Assembly (NCBI GenBank): GCA_000388065.2
Contig: KB932209.1
Length of the DNA: 54,585 nucleotides
Reading direction: 5' to 3' (one strand)
DNA from: Fonticula alba ATCC 38817
Taxonomy: Eukaryota; Protista; Nucleariida
Shown: positions 3,071-45,000 of the stretch, piece by piece
How the letters are laid out: each line of letters opens with the position of its first letter
How positions within the stretch are numbered: the first letter of the stretch is position 1
Made by a program: the position numbers and the translations under genes
The notes under the pieces: model-generated
The model's input: the letters and a program-made list of their open reading frames with translations, nothing else
The model's database searches: none
Told to the model about the DNA's origin: nothing

Positions 3071-3080
3071 NNNNNNNNNN
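3071..3080. other. Assembly gap (10 N)
   Basis: Run of n adjacent to a GA microsatellite. Confidence 0.99.

Positions 3081-8910: not shown

Positions 8911-8948
<38 letters not shown>
8911..8948 (+). repeat. C38 homopolymer ending 7 nt upstream of the receptor-kinase ATG
   Basis: Directly visible. Confidence 0.95.
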
Positions 8949-8955: not shown

Positions 8956-11823
8956 ATGGCCTTTCCTCGCTGGCCTGCCGCATGGGCGGGCCCCCTTCAG
9001 GTGCTCCTGCTGGCCATCCTGATCCTGGCCATGCCAGCCGGCGCAACTGTGGGGCCCGACATTCACCTCCAACAAACGGCAACGGCCCATTCCACCCCTG
9101 CCGCCGTGTCCTATTGGGTTTTCGATCGCGCCTCCCGAGAAACCTCCCTTGTCCATGAGATCTCCGCTTTGGGCTTCAGCTCGTCCTTCCTGAGGCGGCA
9201 GCTGAGCCTGGACATTTGGCCTGACACTCGAATTGGCGGGTACTTCGGCAATTTTGCCTGGATGGGTATCTCCCCGGTGAACCCCCCGGACCCGGAGACC
9301 CTGGTCACCCAGGTCTACTCCTCCTCCTCCGGGGCCTTCTCGCTCTTGGGGGAAAGCGCCTCCGGCCTGCATCTACTTTCCTCCTCGGGGCCCCGTTCGG
9401 TTGCGGGCCCCGGGATCAGGGCCCTGGTGGTGCATGCCATCGACCGGGAGTCCGCCTCGGTCTTGGCCCAGGATGACACAAAGGTGTTCGTGGCTCACTT
9501 TGCCTCGAGCGTGACCTTCATGCTCCTGGAGCCGACCATCTATACCCAGACCCCCGAAGCCCAGGGGGCCCTCTTCACGGCCGGCATCTCCCAGTGGACC
9601 TACTTCCACTTCAAGGATCAAATCTATTTCCTGGATCACCAGTCCCTCAGCGGGGCCGTGGCCTGGCCCATGCTCTCGGCCTCGGCGGTGGCCCTCTGCA
9701 TGACTCGCATCGAGACGCCTGGCGCCCTCAAGCAAGACCTGGTCATCCTCCGCGCAGATCGAATGCTGCAGGTCCTGCCGGATGTCAGCGGTGTGCTCTT
9801 TGGCAATTCCTGGTCCAGTGCCATCCCGGCGGATATGAACATCCAGGGCGGCCACTTCCTGAACCTGAGCCCGGGTGATGCGCCGGTTGATGCCCTTGAC
9901 AAACGGCTGTTCTATGTCAACCCCCAGGCCAAGCAGCTGTGGCTGATTGACACGGCCGTCCGGCCGGTGGTCTTCCATCGTCTCCGCCCGCCGGGCGGCT
10001 TTTCCGCCTGGACCCAGCTGCGACTGCTGCGGCTGTCGCTGGACGATTCGGCCCCCGAGCCCTCGGTTCAGCTGGCCACCGATGCCTTCCTCTACTACAT
10101 GCCGGAGGACTTCCGATGCGGCCAGGACGCCTCCATCCGATGCAGCACGGACGCCCAGCCGGTCCCCGGCAATGGCTGGACCTGTGCACCCGGGCGCCAC
10201 CTCTCCCCCTTCCATCCGTCCGGCGAGATGTGTGCCGGTTGCGCGGCCGGCTTTTCGGGCTTCGAGTCGCCCGCGGCCGGGCCCGGTGCGCGCCCCCTCC
10301 CCCTCGACGTCGGGGCATGCTGCTTTTCTTGGCCTTTCCTTTGGAAATCCCCCCCCCCCCCGCCTCCCGCCCCCTGCCTTCCCCGCAGGATCGCTTTCAT
10401 CCCCGATGCCCTCTAATCCCCGAGTTGCTGCCTCCGCCCAATGCCGCCGGCCCTTCCCCTCCTCCTAGTCACTTGCGCTCGCTGCCCGGACAACTGCAAC
10501 TCCTGCTCCCGAGACATGTGCCACACCTGCTCCAACGGCTTCCTGCTCCAGGTGCACCCGTCCTCCGGGATCGGGTCCTGTGTCAAGACTTGCTCCCCGG
10601 GCTTCATGGCAAACGACGGCATCTGCACCTCGGTGTCCGGGCGCTCGGCATACATGGCCCCGGCCAGCTCGACCGACGTCCAGGTGTCCAACGAGCCGTC
10701 CCCCTTCACGGTCGTGGCCCGGACGGCCTTCTTCGCGGAAAGCCCCCTCCATTTGATCGAGGTTCGCCAGCCGGCCGACCCGGATGCCGGGACCTCCGAC
10801 GTGATGCCCACCGGCTGGGCCCTGGGCTTCCGGTCTTCCGGACAGGCGGCCTCCCTGCTGGACGTTCGGGATCCGGCCAGCTCGCCGACCATCCTGCCGG
10901 TCCTGCACGGGCCGCTTGCCAGCGCCAGCGTGTCCTCCTATGTGGAGCTCGGGCCCTTCCTCCGGGGGGATACCATTGTGCTGTTTGGAATCTACTGCGA
11001 CTCCCAAAGGGGGCTGCTATATGTCGAGGCGTTCTGCACACCGGACCCCGGGCAGGACCGGTGCAGGGTGACATTCGGCCCCGAGACGTCGATCGCCACG
11101 CCGGTGTGCTCGAGCATCCGCCAAATCGGCCCGCGAGCGGCTGTGACAACCTTTTCCAACCTCACCTTCATGCTTGCCGTCACCTCGGAACAGCGGCTGG
11201 AGATGAGGAACATCCAAAACAGCGATGCCCCCCCTGCGCTGGTGTCGCTCTTCCCCTCGGCCCCGAGGCTTCAAGATTGGCTGCTCATGGTGGATCGAAT
11301 CAACGGCTTGGTTTCCCTGCAGCCGGTGGATCTCCTGCTGGCCGGCGACATTCGCTCGACCCATCCCCTCGATCGAGCGGTCGACACCAACGCCGCCAAG
11401 CGCGTGCCCCTAAGCCTGCCCACCGGCCGGCCGCAAGCCCCGACGGAGGCTGTCCTGTCTGCGGTGGAGCCCTCCGGGACGGGGGGCTTCCTGTGGCGTG
11501 CGCAGGTCCCCCCGCAGATGGGTGCCGCCCAGGAGCGCACCATCCGCGCGTCGACCGTCCTTCAAAGCCTGGGCCAGCTGCCGGGCGACCCGGGACCGGC
11601 GTACCTCCTTCGAACGGTGTCCTTGAGTGGGGTGCCCGGCCATCCGAGTGCCCTGCTGCTTTTGACCGGGGAGTTTGTCGGCCTGGCGCCCTTGGCCTGT
11701 GTCGGGCCCGTGGAGGCTCCCTGCTGGCTGCAGCCGGCTGTCTTTGCCCCCCTACACCGGCCTTTGACGCTGGAGCAGCTGCGCCAGGCGGTCCTGGTGC
11801 CGAGCCTGCCGGCCGAGCCGCCG

Positions 11824-11882
<59 letters not shown>

Positions 11883-14800
11883 ACTCCCCCGCCTCACCCA
11901 GTCCCTGAATGTCCTCCTGCCGAATTCGGACCCATCGTCCCTGACCCGGGTGGAGTTTTGGGCGATTGACTGCCCGGCGGGCTTTTTCCCCCCCAATTGC
12001 GACCCGTGTGACGAGGCGTGCGACGGCTGCTTCGGGCCGGGCCCGTTCAATTGCGTGGCCTGCCGGTTCTCCCTGCTCGAGACTCCGGAGACATGCCTGG
12101 CCGCCTGCCCGGCCGGCCGCCTGGCCAATGTGGCGACCCGCACCTGCGACTGCCATGCGGATTGCGCCACATGCGGGCCTGACGGCTCGGGCCGGGAGGG
12201 GCACATTTGCCTGACCTGCCCCCCGGGCCTCGGGCTGCCGGAGGATGACCCGGCCCCCGAGAGCTGCCTCCCTTGCTCTGCCACCTGCGCGGAGTGCTAC
12301 CTGGCCGGGCGGCCGGACATGTGTGCCTACTGCCACCCTGGGGACTTCATGTACAATGGGACCTGCTTGCCGGCGTGCCCCGCTTGGACGTGGCTCTTCC
12401 CGCCGGCGAACGAGTGTCGGGACTGCCCGCCCGGGTGCGATGCATGCACCGGGCCGGCGCACTGCACGACCTGCATCGACGGCTGGCACATGGGCCCGAG
12501 CGACCTTTGCGAGCCGTGTCACCAGTCGTGTGCCACCTGCTCGGATGCCGGCACATGCGACACCTGCCCGCCGGGGTGGGTCTTCCAGTCGACCGAGCCG
12601 GCCGTGCCGTCGCCCTGTGTGGACACCTGCCCGGCCGGGGAGTTTGCCGACAGCGGCACTGGTCGGTGCGCCGCGTGCCATGGCACCTGCTCCGAGTGCA
12701 TCACGTCCGCCCTGCAGTGCACGGCCTGTGCCCCGGCACACTATGGGCTCGGTGGGGCACCCTCCCCCGGGGCTCCTCGTGCTTGCTCTCGCTGCGAGGC
12801 CAGCTGCTCCGGCTGCACGGACATCGCCGCCTGCACCTCCTGCAATGAGGGCTTCTTCCTGGACGCCGGCGCCTGTGCGCCCTCCTGCCCGGTGGGCACC
12901 TGGCCCGACCCCGGTGCCCGGGTGTGTCGGCCTTGCCCGGCCACCTGCACAGCCTGCACCGGGGCCACCATCTGCACGGCCTGCCCGACCGGCCGCTTCC
13001 TTGGAGCGGACAATGCCTGCCACCCGTGCCATGCCTCGTGCGGCAGCTGCTCGGATCCCGGCTCCTGCGATGTGTGCCAGCCCGGCCAGGTGTTCCTCTC
13101 CGCCTTGGCCGACATTCCCTCGCTGTGTGCTGCCTCCTGTCCGACTGGGCAATTCCCCGACTTCGGCCTGGGCCGATGCGCGGCCTGCGCCCCGTCTTGC
13201 GTGGCGTGCGCCGGCCCGGCCGACCAATGCACGGCCTGTGCCCCGAGCCACTTCGGCCAGGGCGGCGCCGCCTCGCCGGAAGCCCCTCGCAACTGTGCCC
13301 CCTGTGCTGCTGGCTGCCTGGCGTGCTCCAATGCGGAAGTCTGCGCCGCCTGCCAGCCGGGGCTCCTCCTGCATGACGGCGTGTGCGTCGGGGCCTGCCC
13401 GCTGGGCAGCTGGGCCGACATGCCGGGGGCCAAGTGCCACGCCTGCCCCGACGGCTGCACCTCCTGCATCAGTGCCTCGGAGTGCGGCGGCTGCCAGGCG
13501 GACTGGTATCTCGCCCCGGGTGGCCTGTGTGCCCAGTGCCATGTGTCCTGCGATGGGTGCTCGGCGGCCGGAGGCTGCGACGCATGTCGGCCAGGGCTGC
13601 ACTTCCTCGAGTCCGATGAGCTGGCCGCATCTCTGTGTGGCAGCACCTGCCCGCCCGGGGAGTTGATCCGGGCCGATGGGGCCCGCTGCGAAGCGTGCCA
13701 TGCCTCCTGTGCCCTGTGCTCCGGGGCTCCGGGGCAGTGCGAGGTGTGTGCACCGGGGTTTGTCATGCTCCAGCCCGGCACATGTGGCCCCTGTCCGGAG
13801 GCCTGCGACTCGTGCACGGCCAGTGGCTTCTGCCTTTCCTGCGAGGATGGCGCCTTCCTGAGCCAGGACGGCCGGTGCCTGGCCCAGTGCACGGCCGGCC
13901 TATTCGGGGAGGCTGCCTCCGGCACGTGCCAGCCATGTGCCCCGGAGTGCATCGAGTGCAGGGGGCCCACCAGTGCCGAATGCACCGCCTGCTCGGCCGG
14001 GCTGGACGCCCTGCCTGGCGGCCAGGCCGACTTGCTTGCTTGCAGGTCGGCCTGCCCGGAGGGCCTGTACCGCGCCGCCGGGTCGGTCGAGTGTGCCCCC
14101 TGCGATGGGTCCTGCGCGTCTTGCAACGGCCCGACCGACCACGACTGCTGGCTGTGCACGGCCAATGGCCAGGTGGTGCAGGATGGCGAGTGCCTGCAGG
14201 AGTGCGCCCCGGGGTACACGCCGGTGGGCGGCCGGTGCCTGCCCTGCCATCCCTCGTGTGACGAGTGTACCGGCACTCGGAGCACCGAGTGCATCAACTC
14301 CTGCCCATCCGGGCTCCGGGCCCTGCCGGCCGGGGCCACGCCGATGCGCTGCGTTTCCGGCTGCCCGGTGGGCTTTTCCACCGGGCCGGATGGCTGCTCC
14401 CGGTGCACTTCACACTGCAGCAGCTGCCCCGGCTCGGCCGACACATGCACCCTGTGCGAACGCGGGTGGCTGCTGCAGACGCCGGAGTGTGTGTCCTCCT
14501 GCTCGGCCGGCCACTGGCCGCAGGGCGGCCTCTGCACCACTTGCAGCTCAATGTGCGCCACGTGCTACGGCCCGGCGGCCGAGCATTGTCTCACCTGCGG
14601 GCCGGAGGCTCCGCACCTGGTGAACGGCCGCTGCCTGGCCGCATGCCCCGCGCGGACCTTCCAATCCGGGCAGACGTGCCTTCCTTGCCATGGGTCTTGC
14701 GAGTCGTGTACCGATGGCGGGGCCCAATCCTGCACCAAGTGCCCGAGCGAGCGCGCCCTGTCCGATGGCTATTGTCTGGGAGAGTGCCCGCTCGGCGAGC

Positions 14801-17044
14801 ATGCCGCGGACGAGGGCCCGGCCGGCCGGGTGTGTCGGCCTTGCGCCGGCTCCTGCCGGTCCTGCGTCGGCCCCGGCGCGGACCAATGCCTTGCCTGCTT
14901 GCCGGGGCTGCTGCTCGAGGGCGGACGCTGCGTGGCGTCCTGCTCGGCCGGCCATCTTACCTGCTCAGCGACCACCACGTGCGATCCCTGTCCCGGGGGT
15001 TGTGCCGCCTGCCAGGCGCTGGGCGCCTCATGCTCGCCCGGCTGCACCGGCTGCGCCGGTGGCCTGTATTTGTCGCACAAGGACGGCATGTGCGTCGAGG
15101 CCTGCCCGGCGGGGGAATTCCTGCCAGCCGACACCTCCTCCTGTGGGCTCTGCCATGGATCTTGCCAGACGTGCTTCGGTGCGGAGACCAGCTGCACTTC
15201 GTGCCCGGACGGGGCGCCTTGGCTGCACACCCAAAACCACGTCTGTGTCTCCGCCTGCCCGGGGGTCGGCTTCGTCGGGGCAAGCTTCCCCGGCTCGACG
15301 CCCGGGCAGGTGTGCCTGCCGTGCCCGGCCGGGTGCGAGTCCTGCTCGGCCGACCGGTTGGACCGGCCGTGCGCCATCTCCCCGGACGGGTCGCTGGCCT
15401 GTCCGGCGGTTGCCACCTGCACCGGGTGTGCCTCGCATCTGCTCCTGCATGGGGCCCAGTGCGTGGGGACATGTCCTTCGGAGGGCTTTTTCGAGGACTG
15501 GGCTGCGCGGCCTCCCTCCTGTGTGGCTTGCCACCCGGATTGCGCCGCATGCACCGGCCCGGGGCCGGAGCAGTGTCAGCGGGGCTCTTCGCGCCGGGGC
15601 GCCGGCCTGGCCCTGGGCCTGGGCCTGGGCTTGGGCCTGCTCCTGCTGCTGCTCCTGCTGATCTTCCTCTTCATCGCCCTCCGGCGCCACCGGGCCAAGG
15701 ATGCCCGGCTGAAGGAGCTCCCGGTCGAGCTGGACGAAAATGCCACGGTCATGAATACCATGATGGAGCTTTCGCTGCCGGGCTTCCTCCTGGTCAACTT
15801 GGACATGGAGTTCATGGTTCTCCCCGTGGACATGCTTGGGGCCGGGAGCCAGGCCAGTGTCACCGCGGCCAAGCCCATTGGCAGTGGTACATTCGAGCGG
15901 CTGGGCTGCAGCGACGTGGTGGCCATCAAGCGCATCAAGGGTATGGGCTTTTCTCTTTCTTTTTTTTATTTTCCCGCCTTCTTTTCCCCCTGCCCGGCCT
16001 GTTTGTGCTCCTTCGCGACGTGGCTAATCCCCCCGCCCGTGCGCCCGGCCTTTCATCAGCGGAACTCGATGCGCCCACACTGATGGCCCTCTTCCAAAAT
16101 GAGGTGGCCATCATGTGGCTGCTGCGCGATTGCCCGAACATTGTGCGTCTAATTGGCTACAGCGAGAGCCCGCTGGCCATCGTCATGGAGCGTTTCCAAA
16201 CCAGCCTCGAGACGCTCCTCCAGTCCGAGGTCCCCTTGCGGCCGGCGGTCCTGATGGACATCGTCATCCAGTGGGGTGCGTGATGATCATGATGAAGAAG
16301 AGGCCTCTTTGCTCCGGCACATGTCGCCCGACTGACCAGGGCCCATGGTGCCCTCTTTCCCCCCCCCCCCCTGCATGCAGCCACCGGCTTGGAGGCCATG
16401 CACGGCCATGGCGTGGCCCACCGCGACTTGAAGCCGGGTAATGTGTTCGTCAGCCAGACGGCCGATTCTTGGCGCGCGGTCCTCGGCGACATGGGCACCG
16501 CCTGCGATTTGAACAGCAACCGGTCTTCGGTGTTGATGGGCTCGCCGCAGGCTCTCAATGCGATGACCGCGCGCTACGCGGGTCCTGAGGTTCATGCCGC
16601 CTTCGCACGCAACTGCCCCATGGACCTGGCGCTTCTCCTACCGGCCGATGTCTTCTCGGCGGGGGTCATGCTCTGGTCGTGCCTGACTCGCGCTACCCCC
16701 TGGCAAGGTGCATCCCCTTCCGGGCATAAAGACGCCGGCTGCTTTCCAATGCGCCTGTTTTGCCCCGCTCCCTCCTCGACTCTCTCTCTCACACACACAT
16801 TCACGAACACCCACACATGACGCCTCCAGATAAAAGCATTCAGCAGGTCAACGCCCTCGTTAGAGAGGGGACCCTCCTGGATTTGAAGGCCATTCCAACC
16901 GACACGCCTGCCCTTGAGCCCCTTGCTGAGCTTTTGCGGAGTGCCTGGACGGCTGAGCCAGTGGCTCGGCCTTCGGCTGCGGTCTTCCGCCAGACCGTTG
17001 CCCATATTGCTCAGCCCCTGGTCACACGCGTCGAAGCAGACTAG
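8956..17044 (+). CDS. Single-pass receptor Ser/Thr (TKL-like) kinase with furin-like Cys-rich ectodomain, ~2,519 aa; exons 8956..10285, 10469..15940, 16060..16275, 16381..16707, 16830..17044
   Basis: Signal peptide MAFPRWPAAWAGPLQVLLLAILILAMPAGA; 27 CxxxCxxC furin/VSP-like cores; TM helix GLALGLGLGLGLLLLLLLLIFLFIAL (~15604..15681) followed by RRHRAK. Kinase motifs: GAGSQA loop, VAIK, QNE, HRDLKPGN, DMG, TARYAGPE, DVFSAGVMLW, ARPS. All four introns are GT-AG and phase 1, and the summed exon length (7,560 nt) is divisible by 3. Confidence 0.92.
11824..11883 (+). repeat. (GCC)19GCA trinucleotide repeat encoding Ala20 in the receptor ectodomain
   Basis: Directly visible, in frame. Confidence 0.95.
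11971..15576 (+). repeat. Protein-level tandem array of 26 furin-like (FU / growth-factor-receptor Cys-rich) modules
   Basis: 26 CxxxCxxC cores counted from CDEACDGC to CHPDCAAC, spaced as in PCSK5/VSP-type repeats. Confidence 0.9.

Positions 17045-19509: not shown

Positions 19510-19587
<78 letters not shown>
19510..19587 (+). repeat. G78 homopolymer in the convergent intergenic region
   Basis: Directly visible; length may be inflated by assembly. Confidence 0.9.
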
Positions 19588-19588
<1 letters not shown>

Positions 19589-20476
19589 GAAACACCCACG
19601 AAAAAGCCCGGATCGTGGGTGGGGGGCGGGGGTGGGGGATGACCTTTGGGGAGGTGGGGCCAGCTGGGGGGAGAGGGACGACGGAGCACCTGGCAGGCCC
19701 CACACACTCTCACCGCCCGAACCGGGGGGCGGCCGGACCGGAGAATAGGTGGCTGGGGCCATCGTCGGCAGGGGGGTTCGGGGGATAGCCGTGTCTTGTC
19801 CTGTCCTGTGGCACCCCTGCGCGGGCAGGCCCATGCTCCCCCCGCCTCTGGGACAGAGGGGGCGCAAACATGGGACGGGAGCCGCCTGCACTCCCATGGC
19901 CGGGACGCGGCGGCAAGCTTGAGACAGAGGAAGAAAGAGACAGCCGGCCGTATGGCAGCGGGTAGACGTGCGGGGGGGGGGGGGCGGGGGGCCCGACCTA
20001 TGCCACAAGGTGTGGCCGGGCGTCGTGCGGCCGGGAGGCCGATCGCGATCGAATTTCATATGAGCTTCCCACATTCGTGCTGCCTCCCCCCTCCCCCCTC
20101 CCCCCCTTGTGGCTTGCCCATCCGCCGATCAGCCTTTGGGGCCCTTGTCGTATGGACCGCCGCGGCGCGGCCTGAGGCGCGGCGAACCGGCTGCTGGCTG
20201 CTCGGCGCGAGCCGGACACATGCATATGGCGCCGCGTGGGTGGCGGGGTCGCCCTTTCAGCCTCCGCCATGCTTGCACTCCCCCCCCCGGGTCCCGGACA
20301 TGTGCGTGTCCGGCACGACGCCCGCGGGTAACGGGTCTGGCCAGGGCGGCGCGGGGCGGTCCCCAAAAAAGAGCCGAGAGGAGGGCAACTGCCCCGCCGT
20401 CAGCTGGGCCCCGGAGCAGACACACATGTACTCCCCGGCCGGCGTGGTGCGCGTGCGGGTGTGCACCCCCCCCCCC

Positions 20477-20496
20477 NNNNNNNNNNNNNNNNNNNN
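20477..20496. other. Assembly gap (20 N)
   Basis: Run of n after a poly-C tract. Confidence 0.99.
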
Positions 20497-20587
20497 GGCA
20501 CCCCCGCACGGGGTCTCACAAACACCCGTGCGTATATGGGGGGGGGGGGGGGGCCCAGCCGGCCGCGCCCCACGCGGCGGCAACCGC

Positions 20588-23500
20588 TTACGAGCGCGGC
20601 GGCAGGCAGTGGGAGATGTGCGCGCCGAGGCCCGGGGCCGACACGAAGATGGCCAGACGGCTCATCTCCTTGATGGACATGGTGCTGACCGAGGCATAGT
20701 CGAAACGGCCACGCAGGTCGGTGTAGCCGTCCTTGACGAACTTGGCCTTGCCGCCCTCGCCGCCGGAGGCCGGCATGGCGTACACCTTGCAGTAGGCCCC
20801 GCGCAGGGCACGGCCGGTGACCTGGTTGGTGGCCAGGAGCTGGCCATAGTTGGCCGACAGCTGGACCGCCACCACAGAGCTGGAGTAGAAGGCCGTCTCG
20901 GTGGGCAGAGAGGCCACACGCTGGAGCAGCGGCGCCGTCGAAGCCGGCTCATACATGGCCGCCACCTCGATGACAAAGTTGCTGGACCGGTAGCGCTCGG
21001 CCAGCGGCAGGACCGAGGTGTTGACCACGGCCAGCGAGGCGGCGCCACCATCCAGGCGAAGGATCTCCTCGTGGGCCGGCATGACAAACTGCGCGGCGAA
21101 GGTGTCGCTGCTGCCGGCGTCCGACGGGCCGCGGGAGCGCTTGGTCGGGCGCGAGTTGTCGGACTCGCCGCCTGGGGACCCGCCGCTGCCGCCGGAGCCC
21201 TGCCCCGACAGCTCGGCCGCGAAGGGCTCCTGGCTGAACATCAACTCGGTGTTGATGGGGAAGTAGCGAACCCGGACGGCCTTCAAGCCGCGATGGGTCA
21301 CACGCAGCGAGTAGCTGTCCACGACCAGCGTAAAGGAGAACACCGGCTGGGCGTCCACCACGGCGGTCATGCGCTTGTTGCGCGCATCGGCCCCCGAGTG
21401 CGAGGTCTCCGTATGCACCACCGCCGGGGCATCCGACGGCTGGCCCTCGCCACCATCGGCCACCGCCACCGCCGGGGCGCCCTCCTGCTTGGTGGAGGAA
21501 GCCGCCGGGCTGGCGGCGGAGGCCAGCTGCTGGTCGCGCTCCACCTCGTCCAGATACTGGCTGATGTCGGCGAAGTGCTTCTGCCAGCCGAGGGCCGGGC
21601 AGTCGGCATGCTTGTTGGCCAGCTGCCGGGCCAGCGGGAAGGTCAGGGCACGAGTGCCATCCGAGTCGCCCTCGGAAATGGGCGACAGCAAATCCAGGTA
21701 CGCCACCAGGTAGTCCAGCTGGATGCTGTTGCCCGGGGCCTCCGGCCGGTAAGTGGGCACAATGAACCGGGTGAGCACATCACGCGCGGCCTCAATGCGA
21801 TCCTGCAGGATCGGGTAGCAGCAGGCCACCAGCCACTCGTCCACCGTCGGCCGGCGGTTCAGCGCCGCCAGGTAGCTGATGAACCGGTGGTAGTGCCCGC
21901 GGAAGCTGTCATTCAGGATGTTGATGTGCTTGGCGCCGAAGTGCTTGCCGGTGGTGGCGCCGGTCGGGGCCGACTGGGCCACGGCCACGGCCAGCGAGGC
22001 GACAGCATCGGCCGCCGTGGCCACCGGCGCCGCCGGCCCATCGCGGTCCGAGCCGAACTGATGGCTGCGCGGGTTGACCAGCGGCGAGTAGTCATACACA
22101 TCGACACTGAAGCCCGGCATGTCCACCATCGGCCGGTGGCGGAGGATGGGCGTCTCCAGGGTCACCAGACGCAGGCTGTTGACCAGACGCCGGTTGATGT
22201 GCGACTGCTCGAGCAGATCGCGCACACACTGCACCAGGAAGGCCGGCTGCCCGGCGGCCCGGCCGGCGGCCCCGGCACCGGGGTTGGCCTTCCAGGCCGC
22301 CTGCAAGTGCGTCAGGGCAAAGCGCCAGACATTGGCATCGAAGTGCCCGGCATCGCGCAGGGCCGCGACAAAGTCACGGAAGAAGTTGATATCCTGCCCC
22401 AGGCGCCAGAACACCAGACCCATGTTCAGCTGGTTCACGCGGACATCCTCCCGGCGAAGGTGCGCCAGGATCTCCTCGGCCGGGGTGTTGGCATCCGAGC
22501 AGAGGGTGGCCCAGGAGGCCGGGGCCGCCGCGGCCCCGGTGGCCGAGGACCCGGCCGCCGTGGTGGCCAGGGCAGCACGGCGGGCATTGCGCTCCTGCAG
22601 GCTGTCCACGACATCCAGGATGCGCGGCTCGGCCGGGGCCACACCCAGCAGCTGCGGCACCGAGGACGACGTCGACAGGGACACATGCGCCGGGTAGACG
22701 GCGAAGCGCCCGGCCCGGGGGAAGTAGAAGGTGAACTCCGTCCGGTGAGCCTGATACGGGTACAGGGTAATCGGCAGGTTGGAGATCAGCGAAGAAATGG
22801 GCATCGACCCGTCCGGCAGCTCGATGTACGGGTTGACCACCACCGAGGCGGAAGTCATGTTGATCATGATGACGAAGCACCGATAGATGCGGCCGACAAT
22901 GAAGGGCCCGGTCTCGGTGCGATCCATGGACAGGCCATTCGGCAGGCGGATGGTGCTGTCGGTCGGGTCGATGAAGCGCTGCACCATGAAGATGGGCGAG
23001 GCGCCGCCGGCAGCCGTGGCGGAGGTGGTGCCGCCGGTGGACGCCGAGGTGGCCCCGGCCATCGTCGCATCGGCCGCCGGCGACCGGCCCGTCTCCACCA
23101 GGTCCAGGTGGAAGGCAATCACCGGGCTGGAGGAGGAGATGTGCGTCAGAGCACCCTCGACGGCGATGTTGACCGGGGTGGCGGCGGCGGTGGCGGCGGT
23201 GGCAGAGCCGCTCGGCAGCGCCGCGCCCAGGGGCAGATCCAGCGCGAAGAGCACCAGCAGCAGCTCATTCACATTGCCCGTGGCAAAGAGGAAGTTCCCC
23301 GAGAGGAAGCCCTCCAGGCGGCCATGGCGAGCGTAATCCGCCCAGAAGATCCCCGGGCCGATGAGCGACTCCGAGTAGCCGGAGCCACAGGCGAAGTACT
23401 CACTCTCGCCATACTGCCGGGTGACATCCAGCGACTCGTAGCTCGGGTCCTGGTCGACCTCCATCTGGTCGCTGAGGGCGGCCATCTCATCGTAAGAGGG

Positions 23501-26500
23501 CATGGCATTGGCGAAGGCCCCGCCACGCGTGGCGGCCATGGACTTCTTGGCCATGCGCAGCGGAGCCGCGGCCATGCTCATCAGCCCGGCGGACTTGACG
23601 CTGCGCGACCGGGTCGGCATGCTGCTCATCTCGGCATCCACGGACATCAGCGACATCGGGGCCGCCATGCGAGCCATCATCAGCTGCGGCTGAGGGGGCC
23701 CGGCCATGCAGGCCACCGGCGGTGGGGGCGCCGCGCCAGGGGCAGGGCACCGGGCGGCGGGCGGCGGCGGCGGCGGGCCACCGGCCGCCATAAACCCACC
23801 CCCGAAGCCCATCAGCATATCGCCACGGCCGGAGGAAGACCGAGACACGGCAAAGGGATTGCCCGCCGAGTCGTCATCCTCATCCTCATCCAGGTTCAGC
23901 TCCTCGGCGTCGCTGTCCCCATCGTCGGAAGACACCTCCTCGAAGGAGTCGGAGTCGGTGGACTTGTCCGAGTCACTGGCATCACTGTCAGCCTCATCGT
24001 CCTTGGACGCGGCGTCGGACTTCTTGGTGTCGAGCTCACTGCTCCCGAGAAGCTCCTGCAGCAGATCATCAATGTCATCCGAGCTGTCGAGGACCATCTT
24101 GTGGTGCTCGGTCCACTGGGTCGGGTCGGCGGTCTCCGGGGCCAGAAGCTCCACCCGGCGAAGGGCCGCCAGGCGCTGCTCCGGGGTCACCTGGTGCCCG
24201 GGAGACTCGGCGAAGCCCAGCAGCAGCAGCTCAAACACATTCAGCGACTGCATGGCCACCGGGCTGGTGTAGAATTCCAGCGACTCATCCAGCAGCCAGC
24301 GATCGATGAAGGTGTGCCGGACCTTGGCCACCAGCAGCGGGCGCACATGCTCCTCGAAGAAGACACGATCCCGGCGCCAGATGAAGAGATGCAACTCGTG
24401 CGAGGCATGCTTCGACAGCCAGTGGCGCTTCTGCGCGGTGGTCAGCGCCGGCCAGGCAAGCATGCGCGTCAGCAGGCCGTCCGCCGCCGGGGGAAGGTTC
24501 GACCGGGACTGCCGCAGCAGCGACACCACCGAATCCAGCGTCGACAGCAGCCGATAGCTGGACAGGGCCGAAGTGGACACCTGGATGGCCGGCGCGGCCG
24601 GGGTCAACAGCGACACCTTGCGATCGATGACAAAGTCCCCGAGGGCCGGGGCCAGGTGGGCCTCGGCCTCCTGGCCCGGGGCCACCGGAGCCCGGGGGAT
24701 GGACGAGAAGAAGCGCACATCGCGCGAGAAGAGGTACCCGGTGGCCGGGGTGGCGGGCAGGCCGCCGGCCACGGCCGAGGGGACCCCCCCGGCCGCCGGC
24801 CGCGGCCCCTGCTGGAGGGCCACACGCAGGGAGGCCGTGGACTCGGTGTCGGCCGCCAGGACCTCGGCCACGGTCCACGGACAGGCGCCATTGGACACCG
24901 GCGGCAGCGGGATCACCAGGCGCCCGGACCGCAGGCACGGCCGCAAATTGGTCAGGGTCACGGCCACCGGGGCCAGGAAGTCACAAGCCGGCGCCAGGTG
25001 CGACGGGCTGATCAGGTTGGTGACCGGGTGCGCATGGCGCCCGGCAAACCCGAGCGACAGGAAGTCCCCGGTGTTGGCATTGTCCCCATGGAGCAGGCGC
25101 ACATCGTCCGCCACACGGGCCGCCTTCTCCCGGAGCTGGCGGCCCACGCCAACCACATCCTCGCGATAGGCGGACGAATCGCGGACCTCATCCTTCTTGG
25201 TGGAGGTCTCCTTCAGGGGGACCGGATTGACCAGGGCATGGGGCTTGCGCAGCATGCTGCCCGGGGCCGGGCTCGAGCCGAGCTTCTGCCGGGACATGAC
25301 ATACACGGTCTCATCACCGAGGGACCGGTTGCTGGCGAAGGAGCCGGTCGGCTTGAAGCTCGGCTGGTCGCTCGAGTGGGTCGGCACCGCCGGCAGGGTG
25401 GTCGACAGCTCGGTGGAGGCATGCTCGCTGGCCAGCTGCGAGAAGACCACATGCACCCGGGTGGCAGGGGTGACATTGCCCAGGTGCAGCTGCATGGACT
25501 GGCCATCGGGCATCAGCTCGCACTGGCGGACAACCAGGTCACGCGGGGCGCGGCGATGGAAGAGCAAGTCATTCTCCAGGACCAGGTGCGAGTCGAGCCA
25601 GTGCTGGCTGCTGACCGGGGTGCCGGTGGTGCTGACCGTGCCGGCGGCACTGGCCGGGGCGCCGCCGACCGTCAGGCGGCGCTGGGCCACCAGCACCGGC
25701 CGGGCCAGCTGGCCATCCACAAACAGCTGGTACCGACCCGGGGGCAGGCCACGCGCATCGATGGTCGCATGCATGGGCCGGCTGAGCAGGGCCGCCGAGG
25801 AGGGCAGCCCCACACGCACGGCCTTCGACCAGTTGACCAGGGGCAGGGCCCTGTGCGAGAGGCTCGTGGAGAAGAGGCTGACCATGGGCGTGTGCAGGGG
25901 CTGGCTGGTGCCGGCAAAGCCGATGGGAATGTCCACCACCTCGTCCGGAGCCACAACCACCGTGTTGGAGGAGGTGGACCACATGCGGTTCTCCTGGGCA
26001 GCCGGCAGGGCGAACGTGCGGCTGATGTAACCATCGACCCAGGAACAACGGGCATGGACCTCCACCGTCAGAACACCGGCCAGCGGGCCAAGGGCCACGG
26101 TGCCCGCCTCGTCGGTCACCAGGGTCATGGCCACCCGGAAGGAGGACCCATGGGACACGCCATGGGCGCTGCCCTGGCCATCGCCATGATGCCGGCCGCG
26201 GTGGAACGGCTGGAGGTCGGCCCGGTACCGGCACCAGGTGGTCGTCAGCCAGAGGCTCAGGGTGACATTGGGCAGGGCCTCGCCGGCCGGGCCGAGCACG
26301 GCCAGCCGATAGCCGGACGCCACGTGGGGCAGCGGCGCGGCCGCGCTCCACTGCAGGTCATCACCGCCATCGGAGACGTCGGCATCCGAGAGACTGCCAG
26401 AGGCATTGGCGCTGCCCAGCGACGGGCTGGCCACCGAGGAGACCGACGCCACCGAGGCCACCGAGGCCGAGCCGGCCGAGGAGGCCGAACCACCGAGCGA

Positions 26501-27633
26501 GGTCTTCAGCTTGCCCAGGGCATTGGTCAGGATGTTGGTGGGGTTGACAATGGACCGGCGCGCGGGGTGATCCGCGCGCGGGGTCGGAGCCGGGGCATCG
26601 CCCGAAGAGCTGCACAGCGTCGGCATGTCGGATGTCTTGGCAAAGACATCGGCCGCCGGGGCCAGCTGGCTCGGGGGCAGGAGGAAGAAGTCGATCGGGG
26701 CCTGCTGCGACAGGCTGGAAGACACCTCGATGCTCTGGGAGGCCGCCAGGCGGATGGGCTCCTCGGAGCCGACAGCGCACAGGGCGCGGAGCTCCACCAC
26801 CAGGCGCACGTCCACGGAGATGAGATTCGGCGGGACGCGGAACTGGCGAACCAGGTCGGCGGTGGAGGACAGCCGCACGCGAGAGTATTGCGTGGTGATG
26901 CGGTTGCCATCGGCCGTCTGGGCGCAGATGACCAGACGACCGAGGACCAGCGGCCCGGCGGAGGCAGCCACCCCGGGAACCGGGGCCCGGAAGAAGTCCA
27001 GCGGGACCGGGACCTGGCACCCGCCGACGCGCACCACCGGCCGGACTACCAAGCTGGCCATGGTGTGCGGCATGAGGGACTCGCGCGGCAGCAAACAGGC
27101 GATGGACAGCTCGTAGTTCTCGGCCAGCCGAGTGAAGGAGCTGGCAGCCACCTGGAAGTGGTCGCCCCGCTGGAGCAGCGGCAGCTCCGACGCGATGACC
27201 GGGCGCTCCCGGCTGTCGGGCCAGGACGAGGGGATGTTGGCATCGAGCCCATCACCCCCGCGCCGAGCGCCGCTGCCACCGCCTCCGTGGGATTCGGAAT
27301 GAGCCAGGGCCTGCGAGTGGGACCCATCGCGACCGAAGGGGATGAGAATGTCACCGGAGGAGGCCGCCCGATAGGTGACCCCGGCGAACTTCACCGACAC
27401 CGGGGCCTCGCGCGTGGGCTTGACAATGGCCCCGTCGCTGTCGAGCAGGCACAGGAGATGGCCCTTGGGGACCAGCTTCTCCATGAGCGTCAGCGACTCG
27501 ATGCGGATGTGCGCGCGGCTGCTGGTACCGCGGCCGATGAACTCAATGATCTGAGATTCGCGCGTGCGTGGGGGTGTGAGGGGCGTGAGGAAACGACGGA
27601 AGGAGGGAGTTAGAAAACAGGCATCCCCATGGG

Positions 27634-27667
<34 letters not shown>

Positions 27668-29711
27668 AGCCAAGGAGCGACAGGGGAATCGGCCACGCAC
27701 ATACTCGCCCGGCTGCGTCAGCTGCGGGAAGGAGTAGGTCAGAAGCTGGCGACGGACGGGCGGCACGGCCTCGTAGGAGTGCGTCTCCTCGTGGGCGAAG
27801 CCATCCAGACCATCCAGATTCAGGTCGGTGGGGTTGGGAGCGCGGCCGTGCTTGTTGAAGTACGCCTCGATGTTCAGGCGGAAGGCCTTGATCCGGAGGA
27901 GGGGGATATTCTTCACGTGCAGGCTCAGGGACACCGGCTGGCCAGCGCGGAAGAAGGAGCGATTGGCCGCCGAGGCGAAGGTCAGCTCGGAGCTCTCGAC
28001 CAGGGACCGGTACTCGTAATCCGGCAGCGAGGCAATCCACTTGGCCTCATTGGCCGGAGTGGCGGGGAGGGCCACAGTACCGCCATTCTGCAGCATGATC
28101 CGCGCAAAGAGCGGATGGATGTCGGACGGCGTGAAGGAGGAGGTGATGGTGTCGGTCATGCCCTTCTGCAGGAAGTAGCTCTCGAAGTAGGCCTCCACCA
28201 TTCCGGGCAGGTCGGCCACCGGGGGCACTGCCCCATCATTGTCCGACACAAGGAACTGGTAGTTGGGCTCCTTGATGGTGATGCCGGACATGAAGCGGCG
28301 CAGGGAATACGGATGGAGGGTCCAGTAGCGCTCGAAGTTGGCCAGATCCAGCTTGACCGGGCCGGTCTGCCCGGCGGCCATGGCCTCGCGCGTGCGCAGC
28401 GTGCGATCCACATCCAGGAAGGCCTCCATCCAGCGGGACATGAAGGACGCCGGCAAGGAGCTCTTCTGCACCCACTTCATGTGGGTCTTCAGATACTCGT
28501 GCAGGTTCTCCTCGGTGGGGGCGCGCGAGTAGGCTGACTCGAGGTAGCGGCGATGGAGGACTGCATAGGCGAGTTGGGGGCGAGAGGGAGAGAGAGGGAG
28601 AGAGGGGGGGGGAGAGGACATGTTAGCAGGAGGACACGCAAATGCACGTTGACAGCCAGATAGGGGCAAGGCGTATGACGGGGAGAAGGAGCGTTGTGCA
28701 GGCATGTGTGTGTGTGTGTGTGTGTGCTAGGAGGCAGGCACTTACGGATGGGGTACAGGCGAAGATTGGAGGCCTTGTTGGAGGACACCTTGGAGATGAT
28801 GTACTCGATGCTGCTGGTGGGCAGAAGCTCGACGCGATCGCTGAAGTCCATGCCGGAGCTGGCGGCACGAACGATGAGCTTCGGCAGGCGCGGGTCAACG
28901 GGCGACAGAGCATGGATGAAGTTGGCCAAGTTGTCGCTCTTGACGGTGTCCGGGTTGACGAGGGCCAGTGCCTGGGGGCTGAGGGAGGTGTAGTCATAGC
29001 CTGGATACGCGACGAAGGGCCACAGAAAAAAGCGACAGAGGGCGAGAGATGGCCGGAGACAGAGACAGCGAGGGAAGGGGAGGGGGGGGGGGGGGGGGAG
29101 ATCAGAAGGGGGCCCCAAAAGGAGCGAGGAGCAACGGGCAACGGGGGAGCCACCCGATCGCCAAACAAGCTGTGCGCACCATTCTCCGACAGGAGGGCCT
29201 CGACGGTCTTCACCGGGTCGATGATGTTGTTGTTCAGCAGGGTCGGGTGGGCGCTCGCGCCGGCAGCGGCACTGCTCTTCTCGGAGAAGGGCACCGGCTG
29301 GGCCGACACATCGGGGATGTTGAAGAACTTCTGCAGGAACTGCAGAAATTGCTTCTGGAAGTCGGCCACCGCCTCCGAGGAGAAGGTCGGCCCGACGCCA
29401 TTGACCAGGAGCGAAGAGCCGAGGCGCAGCTTGAAGATGGAATCAAGCAGCTGGCTGTGCTCGTGCGATCCATTGCGCGAGAACTTCTCCAGTTCCGCAC
29501 TGATGGCCGGCAGATCCAGCGGCTGGGACACATCCTGGAGCTTGTACAGCAGCGTCAGGAAGGTCTTCACCCGCGGAGAGCTGAAGGTGGTCTCCTGCAG
29601 GAAGGCCTCGCGGTTATCGGCGAAGGCGAAAGCCTCCAGCTGCATCAGGTCATCCTTGCTGGAGAAGAAGCCCGCCTGGCTCTCGCTGTCGACGATCTGA
29701 CGGATGGTCAT
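20588..29711 (-). CDS. Giant ~2,869-aa protein, macroglobulin (MG)-domain-like, no signal peptide; exons 29711..29180, 29000..28746, 28560..27701, 27550..20588
   Basis: Introns 29001..29179 (gtgcgc/ccag), 28561..28745 (gtaagt/gcag) and 27551..27700 (gtgcgt/tcag) are phase-consistent, total 8,610 nt. Motifs: N-terminal LEAFAFADNREAFL; PVSLSLHVKNIPLLRIKAF...DLNLDGL...EY/IIEFIGRGTSSRA; C-terminal AYCKVYA...FVKDGYTDLRGRFDYASVST...LAIFV. From memory these match a family of ~2,000-aa proteins of myxobacteria/planctomycetes and scattered protists (Dictyostelium AbpF-like). The family assignment is recall, not a database result. Confidence 0.85.
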
Positions 29712-30002: not shown

Positions 30003-30043
<41 letters not shown>

Positions 30044-35916: not shown

Positions 35917-35963
35917 NNNNNNNNNNNNNNNNNNNNNNNNNNNNNNNNNNNNNNNNNNNNNNN
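35917..35963. other. Assembly gap (47 N)
   Basis: Run of n between G and C tracts. Confidence 0.99.
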
Positions 35964-40250: not shown

Positions 40251-40410
40251 NNNNNNNNNNNNNNNNNNNNNNNNNNNNNNNNNNNNNNNNNNNNNNNNNN
40301 NNNNNNNNNNNNNNNNNNNNNNNNNNNNNNNNNNNNNNNNNNNNNNNNNNNNNNNNNNNNNNNNNNNNNNNNNNNNNNNNNNNNNNNNNNNNNNNNNNNN
40401 NNNNNNNNNN
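40251..40410. other. Assembly gap (160 N)
   Basis: Run of n between poly-G and (TG)n. Confidence 0.99.
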
Positions 40411-41592: not shown

Positions 41593-42043
41593 NNNNNNNN
41601 NNNNNNNNNNNNNNNNNNNNNNNNNNNNNNNNNNNNNNNNNNNNNNNNNNNNNNNNNNNNNNNNNNNNNNNNNNNNNNNNNNNNNNNNNNNNNNNNNNNN
41701 NNNNNNNNNNNNNNNNNNNNNNNNNNNNNNNNNNNNNNNNNNNNNNNNNNNNNNNNNNNNNNNNNNNNNNNNNNNNNNNNNNNNNNNNNNNNNNNNNNNN
41801 NNNNNNNNNNNNNNNNNNNNNNNNNNNNNNNNNNNNNNNNNNNNNNNNNNNNNNNNNNNNNNNNNNNNNNNNNNNNNNNNNNNNNNNNNNNNNNNNNNNN
41901 NNNNNNNNNNNNNNNNNNNNNNNNNNNNNNNNNNNNNNNNNNNNNNNNNNNNNNNNNNNNNNNNNNNNNNNNNNNNNNNNNNNNNNNNNNNNNNNNNNNN
42001 NNNNNNNNNNNNNNNNNNNNNNNNNNNNNNNNNNNNNNNNNNN
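41593..42043. other. Assembly gap (451 N); may hide the true start of the PI4K gene
   Basis: Run of n. Confidence 0.99.
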
Positions 42044-42045
42044 CG

Positions 42046-45000
42046 ATGCACGAGGGGTCCGATTACATCGAGTATACGGAAAACACCCCGCTCGTGTCGG
42101 CTCCCAAGTCCGGTGGTGCCGTCCCGCGTGGATCTACCCGCCGCGGAGCAACTCCCTCGGCCGAGCGCCTGGATGAGCAGCGGGCGCCCGCCCGTTCGAC
42201 GCGCCTGCGCGAGCCGAAGTGCAACTGGACGCCGGCTGCCGACAGCGCCGACGCCGACACCGACGCCGATGCCCCCCCGAGCCAGCATCACCACCACCAT
42301 GAGTGCCCCCGGCACTCGGCCGCCGCGCAGGCCCGCGGTGGCATCATGTACGAGAAGGAGTGGGAGTATGAGGAACGTGTGCTCTTCCGATCTGACGCGC
42401 CTGCGCGAGCCGAAGTGCAACTGGACGCCGGCTGCCGACAGCGCCGACGCCGACACCGACGCCGATGCCCCCCCGAGCCAGCATCACCACCACCATGAGT
42501 GCCCCCGGCACTCGGCCGCCGCGCAGGCCCGCGGTGGCATCATGTACGAGAAGGAGTGGGAGTATGAGGACGCCCCATTCGACGGCCGGGCCCTGGCTGG
42601 CGAGACTCAGATCCCCAAAGACCAGCTCCCTCCCCTGGTACGCGCTTGACCTCGTGTGCATGGGCGCGCGGGAGCACACCGCTCTTCTTCTCTGCCATTG
42701 GCCGAGTGCTGATGAGCCCCTCCTCCCCTTGGCGCGCGCACCCTCTTTCTCTCTCTCCCTCCCTCCCTCCCTCCCTTCCTCCCTCTCCGTCTGGCCTCCT
42801 TACTCTCTGCCCCGTCCTGTGTCGCCCAGATCGGAAGAGCGTCGTGTAGGGTCGTGTGCATGGGCGCGCGGGAGCACACCGCTCTTCTTCTCTGCCATTG
42901 GCCGAGTGCTGATGAGCCCCTCCTCCCCTTGGCGCGCGCACCCTCTTTCTCTCTCTCCCTCCCTCCCTCCCTCCCTTCCTCCCTCTCCGTCTGGCCTCCT
43001 TACTCTCTGCCCCGTCCTGTGTCGCCCGTGCTTGCAGAAGCTCAACCCCGATCGGCCCCTGTCGGACGAGGAGTTTGACATGGTCGTGTCGGAGATCCGA
43101 TATGCCATTGCACGTGGCGTCTACCCGGAGCGCATTGTCCAGGGCTCCTCTGGGTCCTACTTCTGCCGGGACCGCTTCGGCAATGTGATCGCCGTCTTCA
43201 AGCCCCGCGACGAGGAGCCCTACGGCGCGCAGAATCCCAAGTGGGCCAAGTGGCTCCAGCGCAAGGTCCTCCCCTGCTGTTTTGGGCGGAGCTGGTACGT
43301 GGCGCCCCTTCCCCCTCCCCCCCCCTATTCATCTGCCTGTCCGGGGATTTGCCATGGGGCTGACCTCCTCTCTGCTTGCGTCGCTCCCGCTCCCCTCCCC
43401 GCCCCCCCCCCCCTCCCCCGACCGCTGTACGCACTTGTCCCGATGTGCCCATCGAAAGCCTCATTCCGAATGTCGGCTACATTTCCGAGGCCGCGGCTTC
43501 GGCCGTCGACCGGCACCTGGGTCTGGGCATTGTGCCCCGGACGCGAGTGGTCCGCCTGGCCTCGCCGACCTTCCATTACAGTGCCTACACGCGGGCTGTG
43601 GCGTCGGCCGCGGCGTCGGCATCGGCCGCGGCATCGGCTGCCACGGGCAATACCCCGCCCGATGCGGCTGGCCGGCCGCATGCCAGCACCGGTGCCGGGC
43701 GCCTGCCCCGGAAGATCGGCTCGCTGCAGGTGTTCATGCCGGGCTTTGCTGATGCGCAGTTTGTCCTGGGCAAGCTGCCCAATCCCCATGGCGCGGATGA
43801 CAATATGACGCTGGTTCCGGCGCCCGTGCCGAGCGGCGCCTCCGGGCCGGTGACCACGTCGGCCCCGGAGGGGCTTGCCGCCGGTGCCAATGGCGCCGGC
43901 TCATCCGGCACCGGGACCTCCACCGAGAGCACCTGCTCCCCGAGCTGCCCGGTCCATGGGTCTTGCCTGTCGGAGGAGCCCTGCACCGGGATCTCCCTGC
44001 GGGCGGTTCGTCTGCAGTTCCAGCTGCTCTTCGAGCGTCTGGTCATTCTGGACTACCTGATTCGAAACACCGGTGCGTGGCTCTCCCCTTTCGGCGCCTG
44101 GCCAATGGTCTTCCCTCCCCCCCCCCACCCGGCCCCCCGCCCTCGCCCATCTGTCTGCCATGCTGTGCGGTGCCCTGGCATGCTGGTCTGACGCTCCCCG
44201 GCCCCCGTGTGAACGCGCTTGCCCTCTGGCGCGTGCCTCAGATCGTGGCAATGACAACTGGCTCATCCGCTACAAGCCGCAGGAGATCAAGCTTGACCAG
44301 TGCCCATACAAGAAGAAGTATTGCCCCTCGATGGCCATCATCAGCGAGCCCTGGATGCAGTCGATGTCCTCTCTGGAGAACCTGCCGGCAAAGCAATCCA
44401 CCGAGGCCATCCGGCTGTCGATCAATGTACGTGCGCTTGCTTGGGCCGTGTGTGTGTGTGTGTTTGTCGGCTCCTCCTCGTCCGGCTGTGCATTCTGCCT
44501 GTGTCTTTCCCGTGTCTCTTTCATTCGCGCCGAGCGGCACGCGCATGCACTCGCGCTCGCGCTCGCGCTCCCCCACGCTCACACACCCTCCTCACGCACA
44601 CTTGCACGCACACCCCTACCTCCAGGATCCCGAGAACCCCAATGACCACTGGGAGCCGGTGGACGCGCCGCCAGGGGTCTCGCCCGAAACCATCACCGAT
44701 ACCCAGGCCTTCCGGACGGTTATCGAGCATGTGAACCGGATTTCGGCCCCCGTGGAAACGGCCCCAGGGATGGTGCAGCAGCCGGTCATCGGGTCCCGGC
44801 CGCCGGTGGCCCCACTATCGACTCTGGGGTCGCTCTCCAGCTCGGCACGCTTCCGCCTCGGCCGCTCGGCCCTGCAGACGCCCTACCTGTCGATTGCGGC
44901 CATTGACAATGGCCTGGCCTTCCCCTGGACGCACCCGGAGAACTGGCGCACCTACCCCTTCGGCTGGACCTCCACGCCCCATGCGCATGTGCCCTTCTCC

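Follow-up and report, generated by a model that had tools for sequence, protein, structure and literature searches.

The 54,585-nucleotide (nt) stretch of Fonticula alba ATCC 38817 analyzed here (contig KB932209.1, assembly GCA_000388065.2; hereafter the window) encodes on its minus strand a protein of 2,869 amino acids (aa), H696_05095, which belongs by sequence to the CAGE family; judging from its homologs, four copies very probably assemble into a hollow cytosolic shell of D2 symmetry. The family was described by McCafferty et al. ("The CAGE complex," bioRxiv, 22 September 2025; PMC12485934), who obtained from Tetrahymena cilia a hollow particle of 22 x 16 x 12 nm formed by a homotetramer of the 2,216-aa CAGE1, and solved the Dictyostelium ortholog AbpF by cryo-electron microscopy (cryo-EM) at 3.58 A; the CAGE coordinates are deposited at Zenodo (10.5281/zenodo.17179865). 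Both proteins form a hollow homotetramer of roughly 1 MDa, the function of which is unknown (PMC12485934). An initial annotation, made from the DNA alone, had proposed the gene as the best candidate in the window for an undescribed system with a cage-like architecture. The cage is a correct description of the solved family members; since the family has been named and published, H696_05095 is a new member of it and not an undescribed system.

The whole gene runs from 29711 to 20588 on the minus strand in four exons, as given by tblastn and an exhaustive test of splice junctions. Its spliced product is identical to the NCBI protein H696_05095 of F. alba (KCV68167.1, XP_009497221.1), which is the best database match of the long minus-strand open reading frame (ORF) and was placed by tblastn on this strand in three blocks. 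The three introns (179, 185 and 150 nt) are all GT..AG; the third is in frame and free of stop codons, so the raw ORF of 2,705 codons (20588..28705, minus strand) reads through it. The coordinates, strand, size and exon structure given by the initial annotation were correct, the three peptide motifs it quoted are all found in the protein, and "largely single-exon" was a fair description, as 81% of the coding sequence falls in exon 4. The gene is organized as follows:

20588..29711, minus strand: whole gene of the CAGE-family protein H696_05095, 2,869 aa, four exons, stop codon at 20588-20590 (identical spliced translation; tblastn; hhalign E=5e-154 over residues 25-2867)
29180..29711, minus strand: exon 1, residues 1-177 plus 1 nt, with the conserved N-terminal LEAFAFADNRE from residue 25
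29001..29179, minus strand: intron 1, 179 nt, GTGCGC...CCAG, with a poly-C tract
28746..29000, minus strand: exon 2, residues 178-262, codons split at both ends
28561..28745, minus strand: intron 2, 185 nt, GTAAGT...GCAG, with (CA)n and C/T-rich tracts
27701..28560, minus strand: exon 3, residues 263-549, where the N-terminal helical region ends and the first beta-sandwich lies (VSLSLHVKNIPLLRIKAF, LNLDGL)
27551..27700, minus strand: intron 3, 150 nt, GTGCGT...TCAG, with a (CT)n tract, in frame and stop-free (50 inserted codons that are missing from H696_05095)
20588..27550, minus strand: exon 4, residues 550-2869 plus the stop codon

The coding sequence has 68-69% G+C within a window of 64-76% G+C. 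The gene itself is free of assembly gaps, and the closest run of N (20477-20496) lies 92 nt past the stop codon; further such runs in the window are found at 3071-3080, 35917-35963, 40251-40410 and 41593-42043. An antisense ORF of 2,655 codons (19646..27613, plus strand) was rejected as coding and is a composition artefact, because of the high G+C and because every homolog matches the minus strand.

A search with the single sequence returned 67 homologs, nearly all of 2,050-2,300 aa and without Pfam domains, from the Gemmataceae and other Planctomycetota, the Verrucomicrobiota (Prosthecobacter), the Mortierellaceae, Mycotypha and the metamonad Aduncisulcus; Nannocystis and the foraminifer Reticulomyxa came to light in later searches. 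The patchy distribution among bacteria and protists given in the initial annotation was thereby borne out. BLASTP blocks are colinear along H696_05095 and its homologs, and an alignment of 14 sequences has 68 invariant columns spread over the full chain, the strongest block being the C-terminal KDGYTD..G.F.Y. A profile of 82 family sequences (homologs of about 2,100-2,300 aa) was aligned by hhalign to H696_05095 in a single alignment, from profile positions 45-2123 of 2,126 to residues 25-2867 of 2,869, with 2,058 aligned columns, 26% identity and E=5e-154. Among 1.84 billion proteins, a profile of the C-terminal region found 3,985 cluster representatives at E<=1e-3, of which 1,517 reach E<=1e-30. 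In the GTDB species genomes (one genome per bacterial or archaeal species), at least 579 family loci are present, mostly in the Planctomycetes-Verrucomicrobia-Chlamydiae (PVC) superphylum, the lineages being mostly Planctomycetota (Pirellulaceae, Phycisphaerae, Kuenenia, Candidatus Uabimicrobium amorphum), Verrucomicrobiota (Chthoniobacter), Lentisphaerota, Kiritimatiellia, Myxococcales and Desulfobacteraceae. Homologs also occur in the anammox bacterium Kuenenia, in Chthoniobacter flavus, in Victivallis and in metagenome-assembled genomes (MAGs) labeled Akkermansia. The homolog of Candidatus Uabimicrobium amorphum, a planctomycete reported to engulf prey, lies at NZ_AP019860.1:6850692-6854770.

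This picture parallels the published family, for which 3,521 homologs were catalogued, more than two thirds of them bacterial and mainly from the PVC superphylum, with the remainder in ciliates, oomycetes, some green algae, choanoflagellates, Mucor, Mortierella and dictyostelids, and none in animals or flowering plants (PMC12485934). CAGE proteins have no Pfam domains and consist of 15 structural domains, alpha and beta, in the same order; bacterial members carry signal peptides and eukaryotic members do not, and the authors termed the fold and organization novel (PMC12485934). The type members are CAGE1, CAGE2 and CAGE3 of Tetrahymena thermophila (I7MLD7, I7M9Z0, I7MGF4) and AbpF (DDB_G0291229, XP_635154.1) (PMC12485934). 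Two homologs of H696_05095 have exactly the sequences of OAQ30988.1 from Linnemannia elongata (2,297 aa) and WP_269036566.1 from Nannocystis punicea, the former matching H696_05095 in phmmer at E=4e-52 and the latter being found by profile. The upper part of Table S2 of the CAGE preprint lists both as BLASTP matches of AbpF XP_635154.1, at 1e-109 and 5e-122 respectively (PMC12485934). Through these shared homologs, the kinship that the initial annotation had proposed, with AbpF and with planctomycete and myxobacterial proteins, proved right; the latter are of roughly 2,100 aa. AlphaFold2 (AF2) models of residues 445-1530 and 1915-2869 also match the published CAGE domain order, the latter reproducing the order of CAGE1 domains 12-15: one beta, two helical and a C-terminal beta.

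H696_05095 itself has no Pfam or NCBIfam domain, no A2M-type (alpha-2-macroglobulin) Pfam match at E<=1 and no match among PDB sequences. Family alignment, the published domain map (PMC12485934) and the two AF2 models together suggest the following layout, in which MG denotes macroglobulin domains:

27983..29711, minus strand: N-terminal region, residues 1-455 (introns 1-2 included), covered by family profile columns from position 45 and corresponding to the all-helical CAGE1 domains 1-2
24818..27982, minus strand: array of about eight MG-like beta-sandwiches, residues 456 to about 1460 (intron 3 included; AF2 predicted TM-score, pTM, 0.62, and Foldseek)
24098..24610, minus strand: middle helical domain, residues about 1530-1700, with the motif KHASHELHLFIWRRD...FIDRWLLDE (invariant H1600, E1601, P1620, K1625, D1632)
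23423..24097, minus strand: central disordered linker, residues 1701-1925 (composition)
22607..22993, minus strand: beta domain, residues 2069-2197, containing FTFYFPRAGRFAVYPAHV (AF2 strands at segment positions 155-283, pLDDT 75-94)
21512..22600, minus strand: two helical domains, residues 2200-2562, with YPILQDRIEAA and LDYLVAYL (AF2 helices at segment positions 286-430 and 481-648)
20606..21343, minus strand: C-terminal beta-sandwich domains, residues 2619-2864 (AF2 strands at segment positions 705-950)
20696..20734, minus strand: most conserved family motif, KDGYTDLRGRFDY, residues 2822-2834 (invariant K2822, D2823, G2824, Y2825, T2826, G2830, F2832 and Y2834 in 14 diverse members)

The helical character of residues 1-455 is suggested by the family alignment and the published map, and the middle domain, putatively helical from the alignment, would be the counterpart of CAGE1 domain 11 by position. 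Within the region of the two helical domains, R2467 and A2471 are invariant in the 14-member alignment. The repeated beta-sandwich segments and the central disordered segment anticipated by the initial annotation were both recovered, as beta-sandwich arrays in the AF2 models and as a low-complexity linker of 225 aa. H696_05095 is 500-700 residues longer than its relatives, and its 2,869 aa exceed the family range of about 1,900-2,400 aa because of at least 473 low-complexity residues inserted in 16 insertions of at least 15 aa each, which are rich in Ala, Ser, Gly and Pro. Such insertions are typical of the GC-rich Fonticula genome. Disordered inserts specific to Fonticula (e.g., residues 816-928) also break up the beta-array.

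The AF2 model of residues 445-1530 (pTM 0.62, mean pLDDT 62) shows about eight beta-sandwich domains between disordered Fonticula-specific loops, and that of residues 1915-2869 (pTM 0.47, mean pLDDT 69) one beta domain followed by two helical domains and, at the C-terminus, beta-sandwiches. When the model of the beta-array was compared with the PDB by Foldseek, 111 matches were found at E<=1e-3; the complement/A2M/TEP superfamily accounts for 49 of the top 50 (E 1.9e-13 to 7.5e-9, probability 1.00), with C5 (1.9e-13), C4b, CD109, A2ML1, TEP1 and the Salmonella, E. coli and human A2M among them, and the sole match outside it is a cytokine-receptor FN3 array. For the C-terminal half, the matches include the C3b alpha' chain (2.9e-6) and the A2M of frog and of E. 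coli; with the MG0-NIE-MG1 fragment 4zjg it reaches a target-normalized TM-score of 0.41 over 258 columns. As far as the models can be trusted, the beta-sandwich array thus appears to resemble arrays of MG domains more than anything else in the PDB. Whole-model TM-scores are 0.09-0.22, and what is shared with A2M would be the type of domain and at most the layout of two or three adjacent domains, not the whole architecture. At the level of sequence, the Pfam MG, A2M, TED and bMG models gave no match in 14 diverse members at E<=10, the family profile had 0 matches to PDB sequences at E<=10, and hhalign against E. coli YfhM gave 1.4% probability. No thioester-like C[GA]E[QN] motif is present anywhere in H696_05095, in agreement with the initial annotation, which had noted the absence of GCGEQ. 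Its description of the protein as macroglobulin-like therefore stands for the fold resemblance and for cage formation, and falls for membership in the A2M family, given the missing profile link and thioester and the low TM-scores.

The central linker is found in every member, between the middle helical domain and the motif T.EWAENNYY, and is 75-404 aa long and unalignable. Its composition is conserved from bacteria to eukaryotes: Met makes up 3.7% of linker residues versus 1.2% elsewhere, with an enrichment of at least 2-fold in 58 of 74 members, Ala, Gly and Pro together make up 33% versus 20%, bulky hydrophobics are underrepresented, and acidic as well as basic residues occur in clusters. 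In Fonticula, an acidic Ser/Asp stretch is followed by a Met/Ala/Pro-rich stretch with basic clusters. The linker is not discussed in the CAGE preprint (PMC12485934). It is also a hot spot of insertion. At the linker, two bacterial members (P0077, residues about 1300-1650, and P0079) have folded-looking insertions with weak TPR and Secretin_N-like Pfam matches, and a Mortierella member (P0065) carries nucleoporin-FG-like repeats at the same position.

Export separates the bacterial from the eukaryotic members. Among full-length matches, a hydrophobicity scan found a hydrophobic, signal-like N-terminus directly before the motif EIGF.E.FALA.DR in nearly all bacterial members, whereas the proteins of Fonticula, the Mortierellaceae, Mycotypha and Aduncisulcus begin at or near this motif. 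The first 22 residues of H696_05095 are hydrophilic, with a maximum Kyte-Doolittle mean of 0.19 versus 2-3 in bacterial homologs; by this hydrophobicity heuristic, used in place of SignalP, the protein has no signal peptide, as had been claimed from the DNA. About a fifth of the best full-length bacterial representatives have no signal either (e.g., those of Nannocystis, P0074, and of a Spirochaetales MAG, P0179, besides about 20 others). Like the eukaryotic proteins, these homologs start at the conserved motif, and they may be cytoplasmic.

By analogy with the published orthologs, four chains of H696_05095 would close into a hollow cytosolic D2 shell of about 1.2 MDa. Its wall would be built from the N-terminal helical region, the MG-like beta-sandwich array, the further helical domains and the C-terminal beta-sandwiches, with the roughly 470 extra residues probably exposed as Ala/Ser/Gly/Pro-rich surface or loop insertions. 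As to what the shell does, we tentatively propose an energy-independent container, holdase or trap for proteins, because most bacterial members carry export signals and would act in the periplasm, which has no ATP, and because no enzymatic, ATPase or nucleotide-binding domain is detectable. The disordered, charged, Met/Ala/Pro-rich linker would then be a candidate client-binding or bait element.

Several points weigh against these assignments. The tie of H696_05095 to AbpF and CAGE1 is strong in sequence terms and is transitive, running through the shared homologs: AbpF and CAGE1 were not among the proteins returned by three homology searches, of which that with the 14-sequence alignment returned 12 proteins and that with a C-terminal alignment free of low complexity 23, none from Dictyostelium or ciliates. 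In the separate search of 1.84 billion proteins, the best 150 representatives listed are almost all bacterial or unnamed entries. The Fonticula accession is not among the rows of Table S2 listed down to E of about 6e-76, below which 1,602 further rows follow (PMC12485934), and the PDB library gave neither a sequence match nor a high-TM structural match to CAGE or AbpF. Confidence in the AF2 models is moderate (mean pLDDT 62-69), and the last ~60 residues of the first segment were pulled by MAFFT to C-terminal columns, so that the tail of this model was ignored. The tetrameric state of the Fonticula protein is presumed from the published orthologs. The functional proposal is speculation: no cargo density was seen in the CAGE shell, and cross-links together with earlier reports indicate many unrelated partners (PMC12485934). 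The protease-trap, defence or scaffold function suggested by the initial annotation has been shown neither here nor in the literature.

The structural matches could also mean that CAGE proteins are true, extremely divergent and thioester-less members of the A2M/TEP family that act as intracellular protease traps, in which cleavage of the central linker closes the tetramer. The nearly exclusive return of TEP-superfamily structures for the beta-array and the matches of the C-terminal half would fit such a trap, as would the coarse order of beta-array, flexible center, beta, helical and beta domains, the tetrameric cage of human A2M, and the finding that A2M is the top Foldseek match of CAGE1 domains 4 and 6 (PMC12485934). 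Yet the sequence-level signal and the CGEQ motif are absent, the TM-scores show that the domain arrangement is not shared, Foldseek E-values can be inflated by scores summed across repeated Ig-like domains, and CAGE has a helical N-terminus of 450 aa and a middle helical domain that A2M lacks. No dependence on proteases is known, and the fold was called novel (PMC12485934), so that we regard a protease trap of this kind as improbable. We consider it slightly less unlikely, although still doubtful, that CAGE and A2M descend from a very distant common ancestor. The (G)CGEQ motif is missing from some bona fide TEP members as well. It is equally doubtful that CAGE proteins are an ancient thioester-less sister branch of the A2M/complement superfamily with the Met/Ala/Pro-rich linker as a lumen-facing equivalent of the bait or client-binding region; if true, this would place macroglobulin-type protein caging in the eukaryotic cytosol and the PVC periplasm.

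That the protein serves mainly as a cytoskeletal or centrosomal scaffold, binding actin as the name of AbpF implies, seems highly unlikely. AbpF owes its name to reported actin binding and figures among the centrosome-associated proteins of Dictyostelium, and an actin cross-link was found for Tetrahymena CAGE (PMC12485934); however, most members are bacterial with export signals that would place them away from any actin, Pfam detects no actin-binding domain, and the solved particle is a closed soluble shell (PMC12485934). For the origin of the gene, a recent acquisition from a bacterium of the PVC group, rather than inheritance within eukaryotes, appears very improbable to us, even though the best single-sequence matches are Gemmataceae (E=1e-89), ahead of Mortierellaceae (5e-55), and Gemmataceae are closer in corrected distance (1.45-1.5) than fungi are (1.8-1.9). 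The gene contains three spliceosomal introns and matches the host in G+C, its product lacks the bacterial signal peptide, and AbpF likewise has bacterial top matches in the upper part of Table S2 (PMC12485934), which fits slow-evolving bacterial sequences. In a neighbor-joining tree (687 columns, 100 bootstraps), Fonticula and Aduncisulcus form a pair (60% bootstrap) that lies close to the other eukaryotes and outside every bacterial subclade. The phylogeny called for in the initial annotation thus gave a pairing on the eukaryotic side, in a poorly resolved tree where eukaryote monophyly has just 12% support.

Across six bacterial loci (Planctomycetota, Verrucomicrobiota and Nannocystis), no conserved neighbor gene was found, the one exception being a DUF1501 gene at two of the six; DUF1501 genes are common in these phyla. 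The inspection of bacterial gene neighborhoods suggested by the initial annotation thus yielded no shared partner gene, only tandem copies of the CAGE gene itself. Such paralogs occur as two copies of 57-62% identity in one planctomycete (L001:10001-22881), as an array of three copies of 84-85% identity in another (L004:3425-23205), and as two copies about 3 kb apart on the Chthoniobacter sp. scaffold JAXDQW010000030.1 (L037/L038).

Elsewhere in the window, a 1,880-codon ORF at 10441-16083 (plus strand) contains Furin-like cysteine-rich repeats (Pfam Furin-like_2, E=4e-22) and probably encodes a large secreted or surface protein, whereas Pfam gave no match for nine further long ORFs of the window. 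Two tandem duplications of about 196-200 bp, both exact (100%), at 42198-42570 and 42652-43027 lie beside an assembly gap and could be assembly artefacts or a recent duplication. Homopolymer G/C tracts as long as 78 nt, along with (AG)n and (GT)n microsatellites, are found in intergenic and intronic positions (e.g., 19510-19587, 30006-30043 and 8911-8948).

CAGE is a recently recognized megadalton assembly with thousands of bacterial and protist members. Fonticula alba belongs to a sister lineage of the fungi, and its copy adds a lineage of the Amorphea to the family, which fits an old eukaryotic origin or repeated transfer. New here are the family-wide conservation of the Met-rich linker, the tandem arrays in bacteria and the absence of conserved bacterial neighbors among the loci compared. 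Together with the near-exclusive structural matches to macroglobulin and complement proteins, the linker composition and the occurrence of the bacterial genes alone or in tandem without partners may serve as guides to function.

With vaults, group I and II chaperonins and encapsulins, CAGE shares the general form of a soluble, symmetric, megadalton hollow homo-oligomer found in bacteria and eukaryotes, an analogy drawn in the original description (PMC12485934); no sequence or fold relationship to them was found, and CAGE has no ATPase domain and uses four very large subunits where these use many small ones. The likeness to the A2M/complement/TEP superfamily, which provides the best structural matches in the PDB, lies in a large multidomain protein around an MG-like beta-sandwich array, a flexible central segment, exported bacterial versions and, in human A2M, a tetrameric cage. 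CAGE differs from this superfamily in lacking detectable sequence homology and the thioester motif, in whole-model TM-scores of 0.1-0.2, in its extra helical N-terminal and middle domains, in the cytosolic location of its eukaryotic members, and in that there is no evidence of protease-triggered closure. Compared with the type members of CAGE, the Fonticula protein is longer (2,869 aa versus 1,890-2,418 aa). It shares with them full-length colinear homology, the absence of Pfam domains, the order of helical and beta domains, the conserved motifs E.FALA.DR near the N-terminus and KDGYTDLRGRFDY near the C-terminus, the lack of a signal peptide seen in eukaryotic copies, and a patchy distribution restricted to microbes.

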